This document shows positions 3,715 through 47,787 of a DNA stretch of 47,787 nt, piece after piece. Where the stretch lies: the NCBI RefSeq assembly GCF_001194135.2, contig NC_068981.1, forward strand, positions 48,102,707 through 48,150,493, read 5' to 3'. A program made the position numbers and the translations under genes. How positions within the stretch are numbered: the first letter of the stretch is position 1; each line of letters opens with the position of its first letter. The stretch comes from Octopus bimaculoides. Its lineage: Eukaryota. The notes under the pieces were generated by a model. It saw nothing but the letters and a program-made list of their open reading frames with translations. It did no database searches and was not told the origin of the DNA.

Positions 3715-4330
3715 TACCGAATCAGTGTCACATATTTTTACATATGTATATATATATACATATACATATATATNNNNNNNNNNNNNNNNNNNNNNNNNNN
3801 NNNNNNNNNNNNNNNNNNNNNNNNNNNNNNNNNNNNNNNNNNNNNNNNNNNNNNNNNNNNNNNNNNNNNNNNNNNNNNNNNNNNNNNNNNNNNNNNNNNN
3901 NNNNNNNNNNNNNNNNNNNNNNNNNNNNNNNNNNNNNNNNNNNNNNNNNNNNNNNNNNNNNNNNNNNNNNNNNNNNNNNNNNNNNNNNNNNNNNNNNNNN
4001 NNNNNNNNNNNNNNNNNNNNNNNNNNNNNNNNNNNNNNNNNNNNNNNNNNNNNNNNNNNNNNNNNNNNNNNNNNNNNNNNNNNNNNNNNNNNNNNNNNNN
4101 NNNNNNNNNNNNNNNNNNNNNNNNNNNNNNNNNNNNNNNNNNNNNNNNNNNNNNNNNNNNNNNNNNNNNNNNNNNNNNNNNNNNNNNNNNNNNNNNNNNN
4201 NNNNNNNNNNNNNNNNNNNNNNNNNNNNNNNNNNNNNNNNNNNNNNNNNNNNNNNNNNNNNNNNNNNNNNNNNNNNNNNNNNNNNNNNNNNNNNNNNNNN
4301 NNNNNNNNNNNNNNNNNNNNNNNNNNNNNN

Positions 4331-4370
<40 letters not shown>

Positions 4371-4379
4371 ACTATTAGC

Positions 4380-4510
4380 TTCTTTCAGTTTCCGTCTACT
4401 CACAGGTATTCCGTCGGCAGGAGACTATAGTAGAAAACACACGCCCAAGTTGCCACGCAGTCGGACTCAACCCTGCACCATATGGTTGGGATGCAATCTT
4501 CTTTATTTCA
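4380..4510 (-). mobile_element. tRNA-derived SINE head fragment (same family as 38125-38526)
   Basis: tctttcagtttccgtc...ctatagtagaaaacac...cccaag...gcagtcggactcaaccc matches the 5' half of the SINE at 38380-38520. Confidence 0.6.
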
Positions 4511-4759: not shown

Positions 4760-7150
4760 CCACTTACCTGGTTCCAGTCACACGCAGCTTGTTCACTACT
4801 TTCTTCCAATATTTCGTGAACATATCCTGTGGTAGTTATCTCTTCTCCAGCCTGATCTTGCAAGTGATGTGGTAACTAAAGAAATTAATCAACTCCTGGC
4901 TGGAGACAAAGGTGCCTGTCACTATACTTCTTACACACGTCTTCCTTACTTTTTCTTTCCGCATGGCTACTACGTAGAAAAAAAAGCCTTCGTTTCCCTC
5001 TGGGGTGAAGGACGAGACACAATCTTGGTAACAACCGATATCTGTACTCTTCCCATTGTTGATAAATATTGCTTGGGCATATCAGTAAGAGGGCATTTTG
5101 TGCCGTGAAAGCTTGTCTCGAACTGGCAAAGCTGAGCGGTAGCTCTGCCAAGCCAGAGATATCTGGTTATTATCCAAATACCCCGGCCAGAAAGTTCTCC
5201 TGACTTTGATCAAATGATTTCCATCAAAGACCAGGGTCTCCCCCAGGACATTGTCTGACCTAAATTTCACTAACCCGCTATAGAATCCCGCAGTGGAACT
5301 CCCGTTGCGGGTATTGCCCACCCGAGAGAGTAGCTAAAGTGCCTGATGTCACTCTAATTGCTAATCCCCCAGCCTAGATATTCGTTAGATCCATAGACCG
5401 ATGTCCAACAGGAACATCAACTGTGGAAGATTCAACGTTACGTGCGGTGATCGCACCTTCTCTCCATCCAGGTAAAGCCAGAAGTGACTCAAACTTAACG
5501 CGAATTTTCGCATCTTCAGCGAAAGCAACCCTAGCCCACCCTTTAGCGGATTTTGGCAGCAGAAAACGCTTCACAAGTGGCTTTCCTCCCTAACATAAAA
5601 AGCGGAAAATATCGTTCCAACTTGTTCAACCACAAATCGGGGCAGGTCACAATGGTCAGGCCGTAGGTGATAACAGAATATCACAACCTCCGGCCTCCCT
5701 AGCAAGGATAACGCTCGACCAGACCAGGTCTGGTCTAGGGCAGTCAACTTGCTCCAGTTCTCTATCTAGAAGTCTGGATAGAACCAGACCCCGAGAAACT
5801 GAACTGAACCTTCCATCCAACCCTCCACAAGGTTATTGGACGACATAGAGTTGCCCATCTTGGTGTCGAATTGCAAGCCCACTGATTTATCCTGGTTAAT
5901 TTCTGCTCCTACTACTGCTAAGTGTCTTTTGATGGCGTTTTCCACAAAGAAAGCTGCCCTTGTTTTGACACGATGATGGAGATGTTTTCCGTATATGTAG
6001 CAACTTCTCTTCCGCACCACAGCCATGCAGCACGTCTCCTAACGCCTGCAACTTCAACTGCAATGGCTCAAGATCCAATACATACAAAATCGGTGACATG
6101 GGACATATCTGGCGTACTGAACGTTCAATCTTGAACGGTTTTGAAAACAAATCCCGTTTACTCGGACGATAGACTCGATGTCGCTGTACAAAGCAGCAAT
6201 CCAACTGCTGAAAGTCAGGCCCAAACCAGCTTTAATTCCATCACAGCCCAATGCACGTATTTTAGCCCTGAAACCTGCATCCTTATATTTGGCTTCGAAT
6301 TGACGGTCCAATGCCATTCTCGCTGCTAATATTTGGGATGCAGAGCCCAATCTCAACGCCGCTTCTAAAACCTTAAATAGGTTCCCTTTTATCCTAGCCT
6401 TAGCTGACGGCTAAATCTAATAGACTCAAAATGTATGGCGCTTTGTAAGGCAAGCCACCACCGTTTATTCACCACATTGCCGCTTAATGTCCTTTTCACT
6501 AACTACCTTAAACCGCTACGGTATGCCTCACAAGCCAAAATAGACTTGTTCAGCTTCCAGTAGCCGGATCCCTCCTTATAGTCACTATCGCAGTTCAGCC
6601 TACACTTAGCCATTTTATGGTCAGTGTAGGCGACTTGAACAATCTATGGACAGCTAAAGGTAGACTTTTCTCTAATCCTTATAACTATCCTGTCTAAGCA
6701 AGACTTGAGCTTTCCGTCGCCATTCATCTAGGTCCACACTGGGGTGCTCGGGTGCTGAAGTTCGTATCAATCTGCTAGCTGAAAACGCTGAAGCATATCG
6801 ATGAGGCGTACGATAACACTCCTACTAGTCGAGTCACAGCTATCCAGACGTGCATTCAGGATGGCTTTTTAGTCTCCTAACACAACAAATGCCTTGAAAG
6901 TCACGAGAAAGTTATCTAGGCACTAAGAGAAATCAGGTTGTTGCCTTCTTGCACAAGGCGCGTAAATAACGATCAAATTGAAGGCCTTGTTGCTGTATGT
7001 CACTTTAAGGACGATCAGCCCACATTCAGGGTCTACAAAGACCGTACTTGTCTCTAGAACTAAGCCTTTTCGGACCATAACCACTGCACACTTTTGACCT
7101 TCGGTCTGACCAGGAGACATGATTTTCTCATAGCCATTCAGCAGAGCCCA
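4760..7150 (-). pseudogene. LINE ORF2 pseudogene (APE-RT)
   Basis: VFVDPECGLIVLKVTYSNKAFNLIVIYAP (APE), SVRQICPMSPILYVLDLEPL (RT, cf. RQGCPLSP) and GAEINQDKSVGL. Many stops and frameshifts. Confidence 0.85.
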
Positions 7151-10830: not shown

Positions 10831-11587
10831 AACGAATCCACCTTTCAGCCAAATCAGTACTGGAAATTAACGCGAAAGTCAACTTTAAAGGGTAGTGACG
10901 CTAATATTCCTCTCACTAATAGCTGTGACCACAGATATTATGTGAGGAATACGTCTGAACTCTTTGCACATTCTAGCTAAGCATTCACATCAACTTCAAG
11001 TACCATTTGAAGAGGAAAGTGGAACTTAATGATGGTGGCCCTGTTTTAGCGTGTCCTTCGAAAAGTTGTTGCGAGTTGTAAGACTGAGGTTTTATTTGGT
11101 TTAACCGCGTATGTTTCAATATGCACAGAAACAGACACTGGATGAGAACACATTCGACGTGGGAGATACAGTGGACTAATTCGTTATTTTGTCGGGGAGC
11201 TCCGTCCAAATCATCCTATTTGGTCTTAGCCACTAATAAGGAATTTTCATTGTAGACATTGTGATCATATTCTATCGTTTCATATCGTGAAATATGCATT
11301 CTCATCATATAAAACTCAAATTACTGTGCTGTATTATGTTCATTGTAATCTCCTGTGCTTTGGGCGTTTCCGTTCAATAATACATCATCATTATCATCGT
11401 CACCATTATCCCCATTTTTTAAATTCTACAGGTGTTTTAGACAAACTAATAAGCGTAGTATAAGATGCATTTGGCGCAAATGTCTATACGTTAAAGTTTG
11501 GAGCCCGAAACAGATTGCCATTAGACTACTGCAAACTGCGAAATATCTTCATATGGACTTTATGTCATACTCGACGGATCGTCTTCA

Positions 11588-12788
11588 GGATCTTTTCCCT
11601 TTGGACGCCACACCGAGAAATTAAATTTTTGTAACTAAACACTTTCAAACTTCGGACACTGGTAGAATGCGTCATATAAAACATATTTTACTCTTAGTGA
11701 TGTTGAGAAAGGTTTATATTTTCAAAGTTATATTTTCAAAGTTATCAATGACGTGTATTCAGGTGAATAAAATTACTGCCGTTGTTTCTCAACAACTATC
11801 GGCGGTGTATATTTCGTTCGTCACCGTTATTTATGACATCGTTCGTGTGTTTGTACTGGTTTTAGCTTTAAGGCTTTAGGGTTAGGGTTAGGGTCAGTGT
11901 TTTAGGGTCAGGGCTAGGAATAGAGTTTTAGAGTTAGGGTTAGGGCTTTATGGTTAGGATTAGGGTTCGGGTTTTAGAGTTAGAGTAAGTGTTAAGGTTA
12001 GGGTTTTAGTTTTAGGGATAGGGTTTTAGAGTTAAGGTTAGTGTGTTAGGGATAGGGATTTACGGTTAGGGATTTAAATTTAGGGTTAGGGTTTTAGGGT
12101 TAGGGTTTTAAATTTGGGTGAGGATTAGGGTTTTAAAATTAGGGTTAGGGTTTTAGGGTCACGGTTTGGGTTTTAGGGTTAGGGATAGGGTTTTAGAGTT
12201 AGGGTTAGGGTTTTAAGGTTATAGTAAGGGTTAGCGTTTTAGGGTTATGGTGAGGGTTAAGGTTTAGGGTTACGGTGAGGGTTAGGTTTGGTGTTTTAGG
12301 GTTAGTGTTAGGGTTGGGATTTTAGGGTTAGAGGTACGGAAAAATGTGAAAAATGAAGAAATTGGAGAGGGAGGGGCAAAAATGTATTTCCTAAAATAGT
12401 AGCTGAAAAACAGGAAAAAAACTAAAAGCAGTAGAAATGACCAAACGATTGTGATAATGCCATGAACTAAACATGTCTCAAATACACTCAATTTATTAAT
12501 GCAAACGTAACCGAGATGAAATATGCCATAAATAACAGAGGCAAACGAAATAGACACCACCAGAAGTTGTTGTTGACAAACAACAGCAGTAATTTTAGTC
12601 AGCTGTGTACACGTCATTCATTGTTTGAAATTACCGAAAATAGACAGCTTTAACACGAAATAACTTTGGAAATATAAACTTTGCTCAACATCATTAAGAG
12701 TAAAAGATGTTTTGTATGACACATTCTACCAGTGTTCGAAGTTTGAAAGTATTTAGTTGCAAAAAATTAATTCAACGGGCAAAGATCC
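11588..12788. mobile_element. Non-autonomous long-TIR DNA element (GGATC...GATCC) with an internal telomere-like array, copy 1
   Basis: Arms at about 11588-11870 and 12520-12788 are clearly reverse-complementary. Candidate 8-bp TSD cgtcttca (11580-87) / cggcttcg (12789-96), 6/8 identical. Confidence 0.8.
11870..12332 (+). repeat. Degenerate telomere-like array (TTAGGG mixed with TTTTAGGG)
   Basis: For example tagggttagggttttagggttagggtttta, a 14-bp composite unit. Confidence 0.9.
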
Positions 12789-12912
12789 CGGCTTCGTTGA
12801 TATTACAAAAGGATTGCTTCATCGTGCAATAATTCGCCACGATAAATAAAATGATAATAATAACAACAACAGCAACAGCAATAATAGTAATAATAATAAT
12901 AATAATAATAAT

Positions 12913-13486
12913 ATATATTCACAGACACGACTGGAAGCTATGCCAGCACTATGGAATAACAACAGAAAAAAGATGGTATAAACACACGCCAGAAAAGGTC
13001 ACAGAAAACGAGAAAGCAACCATACTCTGGGATATGCCAATACACACAGATAGAGAAATTAAGGCAAATAGACCAGATATACTTGTCAAAGATCATGAAG
13101 AAAAAAATGCTTTCTAATTGATGTATCAATACCAGCAGATGACAACGTTTCTCTAAAAGAAATGGAAAAACTTTCAAAATACAAAGACCTGGAAATACAG
13201 ATAAATCGAATGTGGAATCTAAAAACAGGAACAATTCCTATCATAGTAGATGCCTTAGGTATAATAAAAAAATATTCAGACAAATACATAACAAAAACAC
13301 CAGGACTTACAAATATATATAACATACATAAAATTGCACTACTGGGCACTGCACACATTCTACGCAAAACACTTTCAATACAGTAAACATAAGAGCACCG
13401 CAGCAAACCACAGCACATACCCAAGGCGCACAGAGCTGCGCTCGGTAGTGAAGTGAAAGCACGTTATAAAAATAAAACTACTGAAC
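12913..13486 (+). mobile_element. 5'-truncated R4/Dong-like (restriction-like endonuclease) LINE 3' end with 3' UTR
   Basis: HRHD...WKLCQHYG...ILWDMPIHTDREIKANRPDILV...MEKLSKYKDLEIQINRMW...LLGTAHILRKTL* (stop at 13384-86). One frameshift near 13110. UTR hairpin GCGCA-cagagc-TGCGC. Confidence 0.9.
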
Positions 13487-13556
<70 letters not shown>

Positions 13557-13577
13557 GTAGTAGTAGTAGTAGTAATA
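13487..13577 (+). repeat. (AAT)n then (AGT)n microsatellite: LINE tail or target
   Basis: Direct reading. An (AAT)n run also lies immediately 5' of the LINE (about 12880-12912). Confidence 0.95.
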
Positions 13578-14598
13578 AAATGCATTGTAAAATTCGAAAT
13601 CGACGGAACAACCTTTCACTCGAACTAAATCCACGTGCATATGATATATATTTGTGTTGGTCTTCAACGTGTAAATAGGGAGATGGTAATCTAATATCAT
13701 TGAATTATATATAGTTTATGTGATATTTGTTGCACGAAATAAATAACATTCTTAAAATTAGTATATATAATTCAGTTGGGACAACTGAATACAGTTGATA
13801 GTAAACAAGTTGGGAAGGAAATAAATAATACCGAAACAGTCATAAGATGTAGGAGACTTACCAGGCCTACTTGCTTTTCTATTTTCTACTCAGCCATATA
13901 TCATATACTACAGCAATATTACTTCAACAAGCGCTTTATGAAACGGATATATACTACATATGAGCTTTTCTGGAAATTCTTTTTCTCCTCGTGCATTACA
14001 TGCAATATTCCTTTGAGTGGTTTGCTACGTTTTGCAGATGTTTCCACGAAATAGCAATTTCCTCTTCTCTTATATATTTCAAACTCTACCTTGTAAAAAA
14101 AAAAAGAACAGGCATAGACGACATCAAGCATAAAGAAGCCATTAAGCTACGAAAAATATTTTTAGTTTATTATGTGCTTATATACATTTGTCTGGATATA
14201 TAGGAATAGCGAGCGGATGATGAAGACAGTGAAAAATATAATCTGTTGGAAAGAGCCGATGATATCTCTCTCTCTCTCTCTCTCTNNNNNNNNNNNNNNN
14301 NNNNNNNNNNNNNNNNNNNNNNNNNNNNNNNNNNNNNNNNNNNNNNNNNNNNNNNNNNNNNNNNNNNNNNNNNNNNNNNNNNNNNNNNNNNNNNNNNNNN
14401 NNNNNNNNNNNNNNNNNNNNNNNNNNNNNNNNNNNNNNNNNNNNNNNNNNNNNNNNNNNNNNNNNNNNNNNNNNNNNNNNNNNNNNNNNNNNNNNNNNNN
14501 NNNNNNNNNNNNNNNNNNNNNNNNNNNNNNNNNNNNNNNNNNNNNNNNNNNNNNNNNNNNNNNNNNNNNNNNNNNNNNNNNNNNNNNNNNNNNNNNNN

Positions 14599-14862: not shown

Positions 14863-15647
14863 TAACACGGCATGTTTTCACAGTTCTTTATGCATGGTAC
14901 GACACTAAAGGAGATCAGTTTCTGCATAAATCAGCGCACTACGTTAGTAATATTTTATATTCCTTCTGCAACTCATATTCATAAACGTAGTAAATAGTTA
15001 TAATATACTACGTTTAACAATAGAAGTGCGCTATTGCTTTAAAATAAAAACGCACTCGAAAACTAATAGCCCTAGATATGAATTTATTTTCTGCATGTAT
15101 TTTAAAGCACTGAACACATTAATCTGCGTTAATAGGACAAAGGTAACGAATCAAAATAAAGTGTCTGATAGTGGATATGGATACTTTCTATGAGGTGAGT
15201 ATTACTGTGAAATACACCCAAAAACTTTTAATTCCAATAATAGTGAAACGTCAGACTTAATCATTACAATGCATTTATGCCTATCATTTTAACTTTCAAT
15301 TTAACCTCTACTTCATTGTTTCGGAAGGATTTAGTGATACATGTATATGTGTGCACTTGCGTTATTTATAACAGATAGATATATCTGTGCACATACATAT
15401 ATACACAGAGTGGTAACGAGACACAGAGTGAGTATTTGTATAAAGACTATTACAATGCGAAATAATATTAACTCAAGATATTTCGATAACATTAGTCAAA
15501 GACGCAAGAAAACACTTTAAAATATTTTACTGCGATAATAGTAACAGGTGAAAATGTAGCGACAGGGGAAGTAGTATTGGTGATAGCAGTTGTAACGTTT
15601 GTAATAGTAATAATAATAGTAATGGTAGTAGAAGTAGGAAGGGGAAG

Positions 15648-16632
15648 GGATCTTTTCCTTTTGGCCGGCACGTAGAAAAAATATTATTTTGTAACTAAAC
15701 AATTTCACATTTCGTATACTGGTAGAATGTGCCATTTCAAACATCATTTACTCGTGACGTTTTTTAAGAAAATTCTTTATTTTCGAAGTTATTTTATGTT
15801 AAAGTTGTCGTATTTCGATAATTTCAACCAATCAATTACGTCTATTGAGGTGAAAACAATTACTGCTGTGGTTTGTCAACAAGACGTTCTGGCGGTGTAA
15901 ATTTACTTTGTCACTATTATTTATGACATCGTTCGTACATTTGTACTGGTTTTAGCTTTAAGATTTTAGGATTAAGTTTAGGGTTCGGGTTTTAGAGTTT
16001 GCGTTAGGGTTTTAGTGTCAAGGTTAGGGTTTTAGGGTTAGGGCTAGGGTTCGGGTTTTAGGGCTGGGATAGGCTTTTTACAGCTACTATTTTCGGAAAG
16101 ATATTTTTGGCCCCCTCGAAGTTCTTCATTTTTTCATACTCAACCGTAACTCTAACCCTAAAATCCCAACCCTAATGCTGAAACCATAACCCTAACCCTA
16201 ACTCTAATAGGAAAACACTAACCCTAACCCTAAAACCCCAACCCAAACTCTAAAACCCTAACCTAATACTAAATCCTTAAGCCTAATCCTAAGATCCTAG
16301 ACAAAACTTTAAAACACTAACCCTAACCCAACCCTAAAGCCCCAACACTAACTCTAAAACCCTATCCGTAACCCTAAAATCCTAACCATGACCCTAAAAT
16401 CCTAACCCTAAACCTAACTCTAAAACCCGAACCCTATCCCTAACCCTAAACCCTAAAACTAAAACTAGTGCAAACGCACGAACGATGTCATAAATAACAG
16501 TGACAAACGAAATATATACCACCGATAGTTGTTGTTGACAAACAACGGCAGTAATTTTATTCAAGGGAACAGATCCCAAAATAGGCAGAACGTCTTGCTG
16601 ACAAACCACAGCAGTAATTGTTTATCTTCCCC
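15648..16632. mobile_element. Long-TIR telomere-array element, copy 2 (opposite orientation, rearranged right end)
   Basis: Starts GGATCTTTTCC at 15648. Then a TTAGGG array (about 15960-16070), a spacer that is the reverse complement of the copy-1 spacer, a CCCTAA array (about 16145-16460), and a deleted arm ending GATCC at 16576, plus an extra arm fragment at about 16585-16632. Confidence 0.8.
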
Positions 16633-37934: not shown

Positions 37935-38077
<143 letters not shown>

Positions 38078-38124: not shown

Positions 38125-38526
38125 CTCTTTTACTTGTTTCAGTCAATTGACTGCGGCCATGCTGGAGCACCGACTTTAGTCGAGAAAATCGACCCCAGGA
38201 CTTATTCTTTGTAAGCCTAGTACTTATTCTATCGGTCTCTTTTTGCCGAACCGCTCAGTTACGGGGACGTAAACACACCAGCATCGGTTGTCAAGCGATG
38301 TTGGGGTGGGGTGGGGCAAACACAGACACACAAACATACACACACGTATATACTTATATACATATATACGACGGGCTTCTTTCAGTTTCCGTCAACCAAA
38401 TCCACTCACAAGGCTTTGGTCGGCCCGAGGCTACAGTAGAAGACACTTACCCAAGGTGTAACGCAGTGGGACTGAACCCGGAACCATGTGGTTGGTAAGC
38501 GAGCTACTTACCACACAGCCACTCCT
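38125..38526 (-). mobile_element. Well-preserved tRNA-derived SINE with internal microsatellite
   Basis: A box TGGCTGTGTGG (about 38512-38522) and B box GGTTCAGTCCC (38468-38478). Several homologous copies occur in this window. Confidence 0.9.
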
Positions 38527-38994
38527 GTGCCTTTATCTTTATCATTATTATCTAACTTTAATGTGCATGTTTCTTACAATCACATACAGAGTCACACTCA
38601 GCGTCCTGGGGCGAGTGAAGCATAAGAGATGTTACAGTATGACTGAAAGCTTGGGGATGAGAAGTGACAGGGACTGTAGCTAAATAACTTTATGTAATAC
38701 AACAAACATTCAAATTGATAGGGTTTTTCTAGGGATGTGGGAGCTAATTGTCAGCACAAACTTTTGGATTACTCTGAGACATGGTTCTCCTGGGAACTTA
38801 TGTAAATGTTTTTGGCATCCTTGTCTTATCATACATAGCGCACCACATATCATACATAGCGCACAAAAGATGCCACATCGTTTGTATTTCAATTTCCTGG
38901 TCATTATATTTACATATTTTTTTCTAATTCTCTTAATGATATATCATCATCATCATCGTCGTCGTTGCTTTTGTTGTCGACGTTGTTGTTAGGC

Positions 38995-40019: not shown

Positions 40020-40966
40020 TGGATTGATGGCAGGCGGAACGATGAAGTTCTTCGAGTAACTCTGGCCATCGACAAATTTGATGTGTACTAAGCGCTCAGC
40101 AACTATTTCAAGCTTCACTCGGAAAGGAAAATGTGAGTAGAGGGGTAAATGCAACCATTCATCAATTTCGTTGTTTCCACACATTGCCCAAAACTTTAAC
40201 AACAGTCAATGGCTATGTGAGCGAGCCATCTTGGTTTCATATAATGATGCTGTCGACAAAATCAATTGGGATCTCTTCCAACTGTTGCCAGGATAAGAAC
40301 GGTCTTTCAAATCCATCCACACTGTGATTCATCAGGATCAACCTGTAGTTTTTTTTTCCAACTAATTCCTGCACTCTCTATAGCAATCTGGGATGCCACT
40401 TTACAACTTAACACTTAAAAAGGAGGCTCCAATCATGCTGCTCAGGAATCTGGATTCACCTCACCTATACAATGGTACTAGATAGTTGTGAATGCGATGC
40501 AGTCCCATATCCTTCAGGCAGCAACTATCACTAGGAAATATAACTATGAAGGTGTCATGCTTCCACGGATCCTGCTAATCCTATTTGATCGCCCCTTTGA
40601 ATTTAAACGTCTCCAGATCCCAGTGAAACTAAGTTTTGCTATGTCGATTAATAAATCGCAAGGATATTCTCTCAAGGTCGTTGGATTTAACCTTGGTTCT
40701 CCTTGCTTCTCTCATGAGCAATTATATGTAGGACGTTCGTGATTTGAAAGTCCTCCAACTCTCTTAATTTGTACCCCAATTAAAGAACATACTGAAACAT
40801 TTTATATTTTGAAGTTATACAAAATTAAACTATGACTGGTTTCTGGATTTGTTTTAATAACTTTGTCTATACTGACGTCATCTCATAGACTCTTTCTGAA
40901 AATAAATATATTTATCTCCTTTAACATTCTTTCAACTCTTCGAGCAACGCCAGGTACTTAGGCTAG
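40020..40966 (+). mobile_element. Helitron 3' portion: Pif1-like helicase pseudogene plus terminus
   Basis: WLCERAILV..N, APIMLLRNLDSPHLYNGTR and FKRLQIPVKLSFAMSINKSQG...FSHEQLYV. Ends CGAGCAACGCCAGG-tacttagg-CTAG|T at 40966. Confidence 0.9.
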
Positions 40967-42593: not shown

Positions 42594-42752
<159 letters not shown>

Positions 42753-46100: not shown

Positions 46101-46886
46101 NNNNNNNNNNNNNNNNNNNNNNNNNNNNNNNNNNNNNNNNNNNNNNNNNNNNNNNNNNNNNNNNNNNNNNNNNNNNNNNNNNNNNNNNNNNNNNNNNNNN
46201 NNNNNNNNNNNNNNNNNNNNNNNNNNNNNNNNNNNNNNNNNNNNNNNNNNNNNNNNNNNNNNNNNNNNNNNNNNNNNNNNNNNNNNNNNNNNNNNNNNNN
46301 NNNNNNNNNNNNNNNNNNNNNNNNNNNNNNNNNNNNNNNNNNNNNNNNNNNNNNNNNNNNNNNNNNNNNNNNNNNNNNNNNNNNNNNNNNNNNNNNNNNN
46401 NNNNNNNNNNNNNNNNNNNNNNNNNNNNNNNNNNNNNNNNNNNNNNNNNNNNNNNNNNNNNNNNNNNNNNNNNNNNNNNNNNNNNNNNNNNNNNNNNNNN
46501 NNNNNNNNNNNNNNNNNNNNNNNNNNNNNNNNNNNNNNNNNNNNNNNNNNNNNNNNNNNNNNNNNNNNNNNNNNNNNNNNNNNNNNNNNNNNNNNNNNNN
46601 NNNNNNNNNNNNNNNNNNNNNNNNNNNNNNNNNNNNNNNNNNNNNNNNNNNNNNNNNNNNNNNNNNNNNNNNNNNNNNNNNNNNNNNNNNNNNNNNNNNN
46701 NNNNNNNNNNNNNNNNNNNNNNNNNNNNNNNNNNNNNNNNNNNNNNNNNNNNNNNNNNNNNNNNNNNNNNNNNNNNNNNNNNNNNNNNNNNNNNNNNNNN
46801 NNNNNNNNNNNNNNNNNNNNNNNNNNNNNNNNNNNNNNNNNNNNNNNNNNNNNNNNNNNNNNNNNNNNNNNNNNNNNNNNNNNNNN

Positions 46887-46930
<44 letters not shown>

Positions 46931-47284: not shown

Positions 47285-47787
47285 ATATATGGAAAGACTT
47301 GAGCCTCAAAAATCAAAACATAGTACAAGACTTCTGATGATTTATTTTTCGAAATAGTCCCCCTCGATGGCGGAATACTTTCTCCAGCGGTACTGAAGCG
47401 CCATTATCCAGGCGTAGAGGAACTCTTTTGTTAGAGAGTCCAGGAAAATTCATATGACGTCATTGTCACTGGCAGAATGGAGACCAGCCAGGGCATTTTC
47501 CATTTTTGGGAATAGAGGAAAGTCAGAGTGGGCTAAGTTTGACGAATAAGGCGGATGGAGAACAATTTCGTATCCACAATCACGAATTGTTGCTATGGTA
47601 ACCAGTGAGGTGTGGGCTGCAGCATTGTCGTGATGAAAAAGGACTCCCCTGGTGAGCATTCCCGGCCTTTTTTTCTTCGATTGCTTCTCGGAGGTGTTTC
47701 AGTAGCAGAGAATAATACAGCCCTATCACGGTGTGACCCTTTTCAATGTAATCGATCAGCAAGATACCTTGAAAATCACAAAAAAAA
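47285..47787 (-). mobile_element. Mariner transposase C-terminal fragment, runs off the window
   Basis: IDYIEKGHTV..LYYSLLL, LFHHDNAAAHTS and HPPYSSNLAHSDFPLF (cf. YSPDLAPSDF). Frameshifted. Confidence 0.9.

Follow-up and report, generated by a model that had tools for sequence, protein, structure and literature searches.

Within a 47,787-nucleotide stretch of contig NC_068981.1 (positions 48,102,707 to 48,150,493; hereafter the window, in whose own numbering all coordinates are given), we identified a non-coding repeat element whose long inverted arms run inward into telomere-like, TTAGGG-type arrays. Our reading, to which we give a probability of roughly 80%, is that it is an old foldback element, a non-autonomous DNA transposon of class II (the cut-and-paste type), with at least two copies in the window. 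Four observations carry it: the architecture itself, the recurrence of the element with identical termini at two loci whose flanks are unrelated, a linkage between arm and array that is ancestral to both copies, and the lack of coding capacity. As a mobile element it is of an ordinary kind; what is unusual is its choice of internal repeat, which is telomere-like. An earlier note on this DNA had described one of the two loci as a mobile, transposon-like element with long terminal inverted repeats (TIRs); every feature that it listed is found at the positions it gave, and its view is strengthened here by a second copy that begins with the same terminus, GGATCTTTTCC.

Two copies with mirror-image arms

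Copy 1 is a 1201-bp non-coding element at 11588-12788. It opens with a left arm (11588-11867, forward strand), the unique flanking domain of the inverted repeat, which starts with GGATCTTTTCC and was delimited from inverted-repeat seeds and a gapped alignment. This arm passes into the telomere-like array (11868-12331, forward strand), which is followed by a non-repetitive, non-coding middle domain of ~89 bp (12332-12420, forward strand), recognised by its match to the centre of copy 2, and by a right arm (12421-12788, reverse strand, placed by alignments) that ends in GATCC and whose own array has been deleted. The short asymmetric spacer mentioned in the earlier note is this middle domain, and the GGATC...GATCC termini reported there lie at 11588-11592 and 12784-12788, the right end, GGGCAAAGATCC, being the reverse complement of the left.

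The long TIRs, previously put at about 270-280 bp, are likewise borne out: the arms measure ~280 bp on the left and ~370 bp on the right, the latter being longer because of indels. Without gaps, three inverted seeds (113, 53 and 55 nt long) reach a complementarity of 78-90%, and over the 251 ungapped positions of a gapped alignment with seven indel events, the left arm is 86.5% identical to the reverse complement of the right (13.5% divergence; Kimura two-parameter distance 0.15). Folded as single-stranded DNA with the array removed, the arms reach -171 kcal/mol against -70 +/- 4 kcal/mol for shuffles (z = -22.8), and the whole element folds end to end at -173 kcal/mol. The right arm holds an extra segment of ~62 bp (~12461-12522) that is missing from the other arms and may have arisen as a small insertion or by slippage; a direct repeat of 7 bp, which reads ATGGCAT on the reverse strand, borders the segment when it is taken as 12461-12525. 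Within the left arm, a perfect 14-bp tandem duplication (TTATATTTTCAAAG x 2.3) at 11714-11745 stands where the other arms carry a different segment of ~38 bp, which marks this position as an indel hotspot of the arm.

The second, diverged copy lies at 15648-16623, the two loci being about 2.9-4 kb apart, and its TTAGGG/CCCTAA repeats were flagged by Tandem Repeats Finder (TRF) at 15978-16465. Its left arm (15648-15959, forward strand), placed by alignment of the terminus, again starts with GGATCTTTTCC and is 81.6% identical to the left arm of copy 1 and 76.8% identical to the reverse complement of the copy 1 right arm. After it come a short TTAGGG-type array of 111 bp (15960-16070, forward strand; TRF period 20, six TTAGGG), a middle domain (16071-16139, reverse strand) found by local alignment, and a long CCCTAA-type array of 326 bp (16140-16465, reverse strand; TRF periods 6, 20, 26, 59 and 85) that precedes the right arm. 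The middle domain is flipped relative to copy 1: positions 12308-12410 align to the reverse complement of 16076-16175 at 83%, the copy 1 centre is 83-86% identical to the reverse complement of 16076-16140, and overall a centre of ~70-90 bp is conserved between the copies at 83-86% in opposite orientation. Only the inner ~100 bp of the right arm follow (16466-16563, reverse strand, by alignment), 92.6% identical to the reverse complement of the copy 1 left arm and 80.4% identical to the left arm of the same copy; the outer ~200 bp are missing. The locus closes with a rearranged end (16564-16623, reverse strand, resolved with blastn), in which 22 bp with GATCC are followed by 38 bp that match 15854-15891, reverse-complemented, at 97% identity.

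The arrays of copy 2 are mirror images on the two sides of the centre, with the G-rich strand running inward from each end. Long inverted repeats form most of a non-coding element, their tandem-repeat domains are mirror-imaged and variable in copy number, and a short middle domain lies between them. Foldback transposons are described in the same terms, as non-autonomous elements composed of flanking, tandem-repeat, inner and middle domains with target-site duplications (TSDs) of 8-10 bp (PMC4079207). We file the element as a foldback-type, long-TIR, non-autonomous DNA transposon whose superfamily is about equally likely to be Merlin or Mutator-type. A Mutator or foldback affinity had previously been listed as a mere alternative; copy 2 moves the foldback architecture to the fore.

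The element lacks coding capacity. The open reading frames (ORFs) across it are chance frames, none with a family match, and a recurrent pseudo-ORF of the arms had zero homologues among 5.8 billion proteins in a protein search. Pfam was run on selected ORFs of the window and on half (10) of the 20 concatenated sets made from stop-to-stop frames no shorter than 60 amino acids; the other ten sets look, by eye, to be mostly low-complexity translations.

A telomere-like tandem-repeat domain

The copy 1 array, previously estimated at about 460 bp of TTAGGG/TTTTAGGG repeats, proved to be a degenerate TTAGGG/TTTTAGRG minisatellite of 464 bp, characterised by TRF, motif counts and self-match, whose G-rich strand reads inward. 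It is G/T-rich with 2% C and contains 28 exact TTAGGG and 8 TTTTAGGG. TRF assigned it periods of 6, 20 and 26, with matches of 63-66%, and self-match peaks at offsets of 20, 6 and 26 in both copies. Split at TTTTA, the unit consists of one TTTTAGRG octamer and then two or three TTAGGG-like hexamers, and when reverse-complemented the long copy 2 array (15 TTAGGG, 5 TTTTAGGG) has the same 20/26-bp organisation as copy 1. Rather than a pure product of telomerase, the array is a higher-order minisatellite with a unit of 20/26 bp. Outside both loci, the remaining ~40 kb of the window contains 10 isolated TTAGGG/CCCTAA hexamers and no dimer, so the array is a real local feature. Canonical G-quadruplex motifs (G3N1-7, four times) number 2 in the copy 1 array and 1 and 3 in the copy 2 arrays, few because the units are degenerate, and the earlier description of the array as G-quadruplex-prone is weak, modestly true at best.

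Arm and array have a common history. The junction between them (...ATCGTTCGT..TTTGTACTGGTTTTAGCTTTAAGG running into TTTAGGG...) is homologous in 4/4 arms, and the final ~25 bp of the array beside the centre are conserved between both copies; the linkage of arm and array therefore predates the common ancestor of the copies. The right arm of copy 1 keeps the junction motif CTAAAAGCAGTA with no CCCTAA repeats behind it. Copy 1 has lost one array, the mirror image on its right arm being gone, and its asymmetry follows from that loss. What the earlier note had placed between the arms does lie there, but it is not a separate insert or cargo: it continues the left arm, stands on both sides in copy 2, and makes up the inner part of the inverted repeats, their tandem-repeat domain.

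A copy-specific secondary acquisition, for example by telomerase-mediated break repair inside an ordinary MITE (miniature inverted-repeat transposable element), would suit the presence of the array on one side only in copy 1, and telomeric repeat insertion at repaired breaks is documented in mammals (PMC7215372). However, the point of the arm at which the arrays begin is homologous in each of the four arms, the stretch with which they end beside the centre is conserved between the copies, and at both loci they are built from the same TTTTAGRG-containing unit. Common junctions, array edge and unit mean that the array predates the divergence of the copies, which refutes the array as copy-specific cargo and makes such an acquisition highly improbable. 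The break-repair model could still apply to the ultimate origin of the array in the family ancestor, where either a telomeric tract that had been captured or the T/G-rich inner edge of the arm may have served as the seed.

Head-to-head interstitial telomeric sequences produced by telomere fusion, such as human 2q13, are the other structure that copy 2 calls to mind, with TTAGGGn facing CCCTAAn between inverted flanking sequences. The order of arm, TTAGGG array, CCCTAA array and arm, and the spacing of the two loci only 2.9 kb apart, could suggest the relic of a head-to-head telomere or sister-chromatid fusion, or of another palindromic rearrangement, that was later copied locally. A fusion-type sequence would have directly abutting arrays at a single locus and no discrete repeated ends. 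Here, by contrast, a conserved non-telomeric centre common to both loci separates the arrays, three ends have their limit of homology at one and the same nucleotide, the termini are GG...CC, and an 8-bp near-repeat lies on either side. The two loci are dispersed in unrelated flanks and ~18-23% diverged, as separate old insertions would be and one local duplication would not, and the array is a higher-order repeat and not pure TTAGGG. We consider a fusion relic very unlikely.

Ends, target site and superfamily

When the three intact ends were aligned with 30 bp of outside sequence, similarity started exactly at GGATC and was absent outside; the sequence common to the three is GGATCTTT. Leaving aside common (AAT)n microsatellite, the two loci have unrelated flanks whichever orientation is compared: the scores of local alignments lie inside the shuffle null, and a 14-mer found in both flanks is within chance. 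Common exact ends in unrelated flanks therefore indicate independent insertions of a mobile family, and the divergence of the arms between loci (18-23%), taken with the defined ends, points to separate old insertions rather than a local segmental duplication. (AAT/ATT)n arrays are unusually frequent in the window (12860-12913, 13487-13578, 15600-15633, 37941-38075 and 42596-42752), and given this overall frequency the one adjoining each element copy looks coincidental.

Copy 1 is flanked by the candidate 8-bp TSD that had been noted before, cgtcttca on the left (11580-11587) and cggcttcg on the right (12789-12796), matching at 6/8 positions. Among the 11 lengths tried, from 2 to 12, a good match occurs at 8 only, the neighbouring lengths of this copy giving 1/7 at 7, 2/9 at 9 and 1/10 at 10. 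Relative to a null of random 8-mers from the window, a match of at least 6/8 has p = 0.006, or ~0.06 when corrected for the 11 lengths. Two mismatches are unremarkable because the arms themselves differ by 13.5%, a divergence at which the probability of at least two mismatches in an 8-bp TSD is 0.25-0.34.

Several points weigh against a transposon family of this kind. The sample is two loci with three intact ends, one copy having both, and the candidate TSD is one imperfect pair at the corrected p given above. No paralogous empty site and no flank paralogues were found in the window; no further copies were found among metagenome or viral contigs with exact or degenerate arm patterns, nor by exact-protein look-ups of the window ORFs. 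As for an autonomous partner or transposase, Pfam gave only the zf-RVT domain of a long interspersed nuclear element (LINE) and a mariner-type Transposase_1 remnant in the scanned parts of the window. The latter is the wrong partner, mariner elements having short TIRs and TA targets. The composition of the right end of locus 2 indicates that it is chimeric or rearranged, or else misassembled; besides misassembly, possible causes are recombination between two members of the family and an event that was nested or aborted. Lastly, the gap-rich draft and the proneness of inverted repeats to misassembly weaken the case. As far as two copies allow, on the other hand, the termini are consistent and the arrays are linked to the arms, two of the points on which the earlier note had staked its reading.

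The window is a gapped draft scaffold with 12 N-runs (5230 N in total) and abundant microsatellites (TRF) and LINE debris. Collapsed or chimeric repeats in such a scaffold might produce a spurious element, and the N-runs and the chimeric right end of locus 2 would be in keeping with this. Yet neither element has a gap inside it, the two diverged loci are each internally coherent over more than 900 bp, and the degenerate array is unique enough to assemble; an assembly artefact is extremely improbable. One artefact of the tools themselves was discarded: the "longest inverted repeats" of ~600 nt at 98-99% (for example 3732-4330 versus 46330-46928) pair N-run with N-run beside AT/TA microsatellites.

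Several transposon classes were set aside on their ends and target sites. hAT elements have an 8-bp TSD and short TIRs starting YARNG; the ends here are GGATC, not C/TA-purine-N-G, and the TIRs are long, the 8-bp TSD alone being compatible. Helitrons and Helentrons end in 5'-TC...CTRR-3', form a 3' hairpin and lack both long TIRs and a TSD, and the ~280-bp TIRs and GG...CC ends found here set the element apart from Helitron- or Helentron-associated carriers. For the P superfamily and Galileo, the 7-bp TSD gives the poor match already mentioned. Galileo has been assigned to P, and foldback classification needs a transposase (PMC4079207).

Four features define Merlin, namely 5'-GG at the end, TIRs between 24 and 462 bp long, TSDs of 8-9 bp and a transposase of the DDE_Tnp_IS1595 type (PMC8101967), and the element has both the terminal 5'-GG and TIRs within that range. 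We hold it possible, if doubtful, that the element is a Merlin MITE with long TIRs, moved by a DDE transposase of the IS1016/IS1595 type: the GGATC terminus is present at 3/3 intact ends, the ~280-bp unique arm lies within the published 24-462 bp, the best TSD length is 8 bp (one copy, 6/8), and some published Merlin copies contain tandem repeats (PMC8101967). However, neither ends that are GG or G-rich nor 8-bp TSDs are exclusive to Merlin, Tetris-type foldbacks with TSDs of 8-10 bp being assigned to Mutator, and the scanned parts of the window hold no DDE_Tnp_IS1595, the sole DDE remnant being mariner-type. The grounds for the Merlin-like label of the earlier note are the GG ends and one imperfect 8-bp TSD pair.

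With about the same tentative standing, the element could be a Mutator-type foldback, like Drosophila FB or Tetris and nematode Tm1. The full foldback architecture of flanking, tandem-repeat and middle domains argues for this placement, and most foldback elements, with TSDs of 8-10 bp, are placed in Mutator (PMC4079207). Against it, TSD lengths of 9 and 10, those typical of Mutator, match poorly (single copy), the scanned parts of the window contain no Mutator-like (MULE) transposase, and the foldback shape arises independently in several superfamilies (PMC4079207).

Possible history, relatives and surroundings

The foldback transposon that we favour is built, at each end, of a ~280-bp unique flanking domain beginning with 5'-GGATCTTTTCC and an inward tandem-repeat domain, the two ends forming mirror images around a non-coding middle domain of ~80 bp. 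Such an element was presumably mobilised in trans by a transposase making 8-bp staggered cuts, for which Merlin and Mutator-type enzymes are the candidate sources, indistinguishable here. Its arrays probably grew and shrank when 20/26-bp units were gained or lost through replication slippage or unequal exchange, not by telomerase, and recombination between the inverted arms probably turned the middle domain round and removed the array on the right of copy 1. The sub-repeats may also offer the transposase additional binding sites, as the analogy with Galileo and further foldback elements suggests. The two copies are dead relics today.

More speculatively, and to our minds very improbably, the family could act as a vehicle scattering oriented telomere seeds, or its TTAGGG-type sub-repeats could be putative binding sites of a Myb- or helix-turn-helix-type transposase. 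As telomere seeds, the complete form (copy 2) would present the G-rich strand 5' to 3' toward the centre from both sides, so that a break in the middle domain would leave both ends with TTAGGG-type repeats. Broken ends of this kind would be oriented as telomerase and shelterin-like proteins need, and insertions might favour chromosome fission or healing, or create interstitial binding sites for telomere proteins. Under the alternative, a putative Myb- or helix-turn-helix-type transposase domain related to telomere-binding proteins would bind the sub-repeats. Telomere-protein recruitment and chromosome healing, both raised in the earlier note, are pure inference, and the present data show no telomere role of the element.

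Known foldback systems, comprising Drosophila FB, Galileo/Kepler/Newton, Tetris of D. virilis, sea-urchin TU and nematode Tm1, are the closest in structure to the element. Like it, they are non-coding and consist mostly of long inverted repeats, with an outer unique domain and a tandem-repeat domain of variable copy number around a short middle domain, and occur as structurally variable, rearranged copies; their TSDs are about 8-10 bp, a range that takes in the candidate TSD here (PMC4079207). They differ in carrying an element-specific sub-repeat of 10-220 bp, whereas the unit here is a telomere-type TTAGGG/TTTTAGRG repeat of 20/26 bp; in comparison with them the present element is also small, at ~1.0-1.2 kb, and not assigned to a superfamily. 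The MITEs of the Merlin superfamily (Feschotte 2004; PMC8101967) resemble it in their 5'-GG ends, in an arm length within 24-462 bp and in the best-fitting length, 8 bp, of its candidate TSD. Unlike them, the element has no known IS1595-type partner, and telomere-like arrays in the arms are unmentioned in the Merlin survey PMC8101967.

As a precedent for the telomere-type sub-repeats, TBE/Tel-1 elements of ciliates come closest in concept. Besides TBE, the telomere-bearing transposons of ciliates include Tel-1 of Tetrahymena and Tec of Euplotes. The TBE of Oxytricha is, like our element, a DNA transposon with a host-type telomere motif in its inverted repeats (bioRxiv 10.1101/2025.03.17.643836). 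In TBE, however, G4T4 repeats occupy short terminal inverted repeats at the very ends, and the element has a Tc1/mariner transposase and ANT targets, whereas the repeats here begin ~280 bp inside the ends as arrays of hundreds of base pairs in a non-coding element. Membership of the ciliate TBE/Tel-1 type was rejected on the same internal position of the repeats, the lack of a transposase and flanks that are not ANT.

Bivalve and Xenopus carriers of internal satellites have a single central array in one orientation, with short or no TIRs, whereas the array here is doubled in inverted orientation within ~280-bp arms. These carriers, which are MITEs and Helitron-associated repeats (bivalve pearl, DTC84 and BIV160, and Xenopus Xstir), are alike in being short, non-autonomous and able to disperse an internal tandem array, but theirs is made of element-specific satellite monomers, not telomere-type repeats (PMC5615363, PMC6947457). 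Reviews of transposon-borne satellites and microsatellites report many kinds, none like the TTAGGG-type arm repeats (PMC5615363, PMC6947457). An open-literature keyword search, with curated repeat libraries outside its scope, found no foldback or MITE family with TTAGGG-type arm repeats, which is weak evidence for the novelty of such arms.

If the family is abundant in its source genome, part of the interstitial telomere-like sequence there would be transposon-borne and not made up of fusion scars. This would bear on karyotype histories drawn from interstitial TTAGGG, by fluorescence in situ hybridisation or assembly scans, and on the placement of telomeres in scaffolding, and it would add a clear example linking foldback elements to the birth and dispersal of minisatellites. 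Beyond that, the element is a dead, non-autonomous repeat with no demonstrated function.

The surroundings hold further repeat remnants. Directly to the right of copy 1, at 12920-13430 (forward strand), lies a retroelement-like coding remnant with WYKHTPEKVTENEKATILWDMPIHTDREIKANRPDILVKD and CFLIDVSIPADDNV, which has no significant Pfam match and which we take to resemble the C-terminal region of invertebrate elements bearing a reverse transcriptase. LINE-type fragments lie on the reverse strand at 166-1408, where Pfam places the zf-RVT domain at 263-667 (E = 4e-11), and at about 4900-6400, where six-frame pieces have motifs similar to those of the zf-RVT fragment (...SALPVRDKLSRH...). The mariner-like transposase remnant (47453-47786, reverse strand) runs off the end of the window; its Transposase_1 match scores 23.1 bits, just below the 24-bit cut-off. 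A forward-strand frame at 40482-40739 (...QIPVKLSFAMSINKSQGYSL...FSHEQLYVGRS) has, by eye, the unconfirmed look of C-terminal motifs of a Pif1/Helitron-type helicase, with no Pfam match even at E <= 1.

A repeat resembling a short interspersed nuclear element (SINE), with GGCTTCTTTCAGTTTCCGTC...GGGACTGAACCCGGAACCATGTGGTTGGTAAGC..., is present in two diverged forward-strand copies at 38376-38535 and 4376-4500, each right after a microsatellite. We presume, as an unconfirmed lead only, that it resembles an abundant octopus SINE; ARAGORN and Rfam found nothing on the window, and a text search with a distinctive SINE stretch was empty. If that lead is right, TTAGGG is the telomere motif of the host (PMC13218726).

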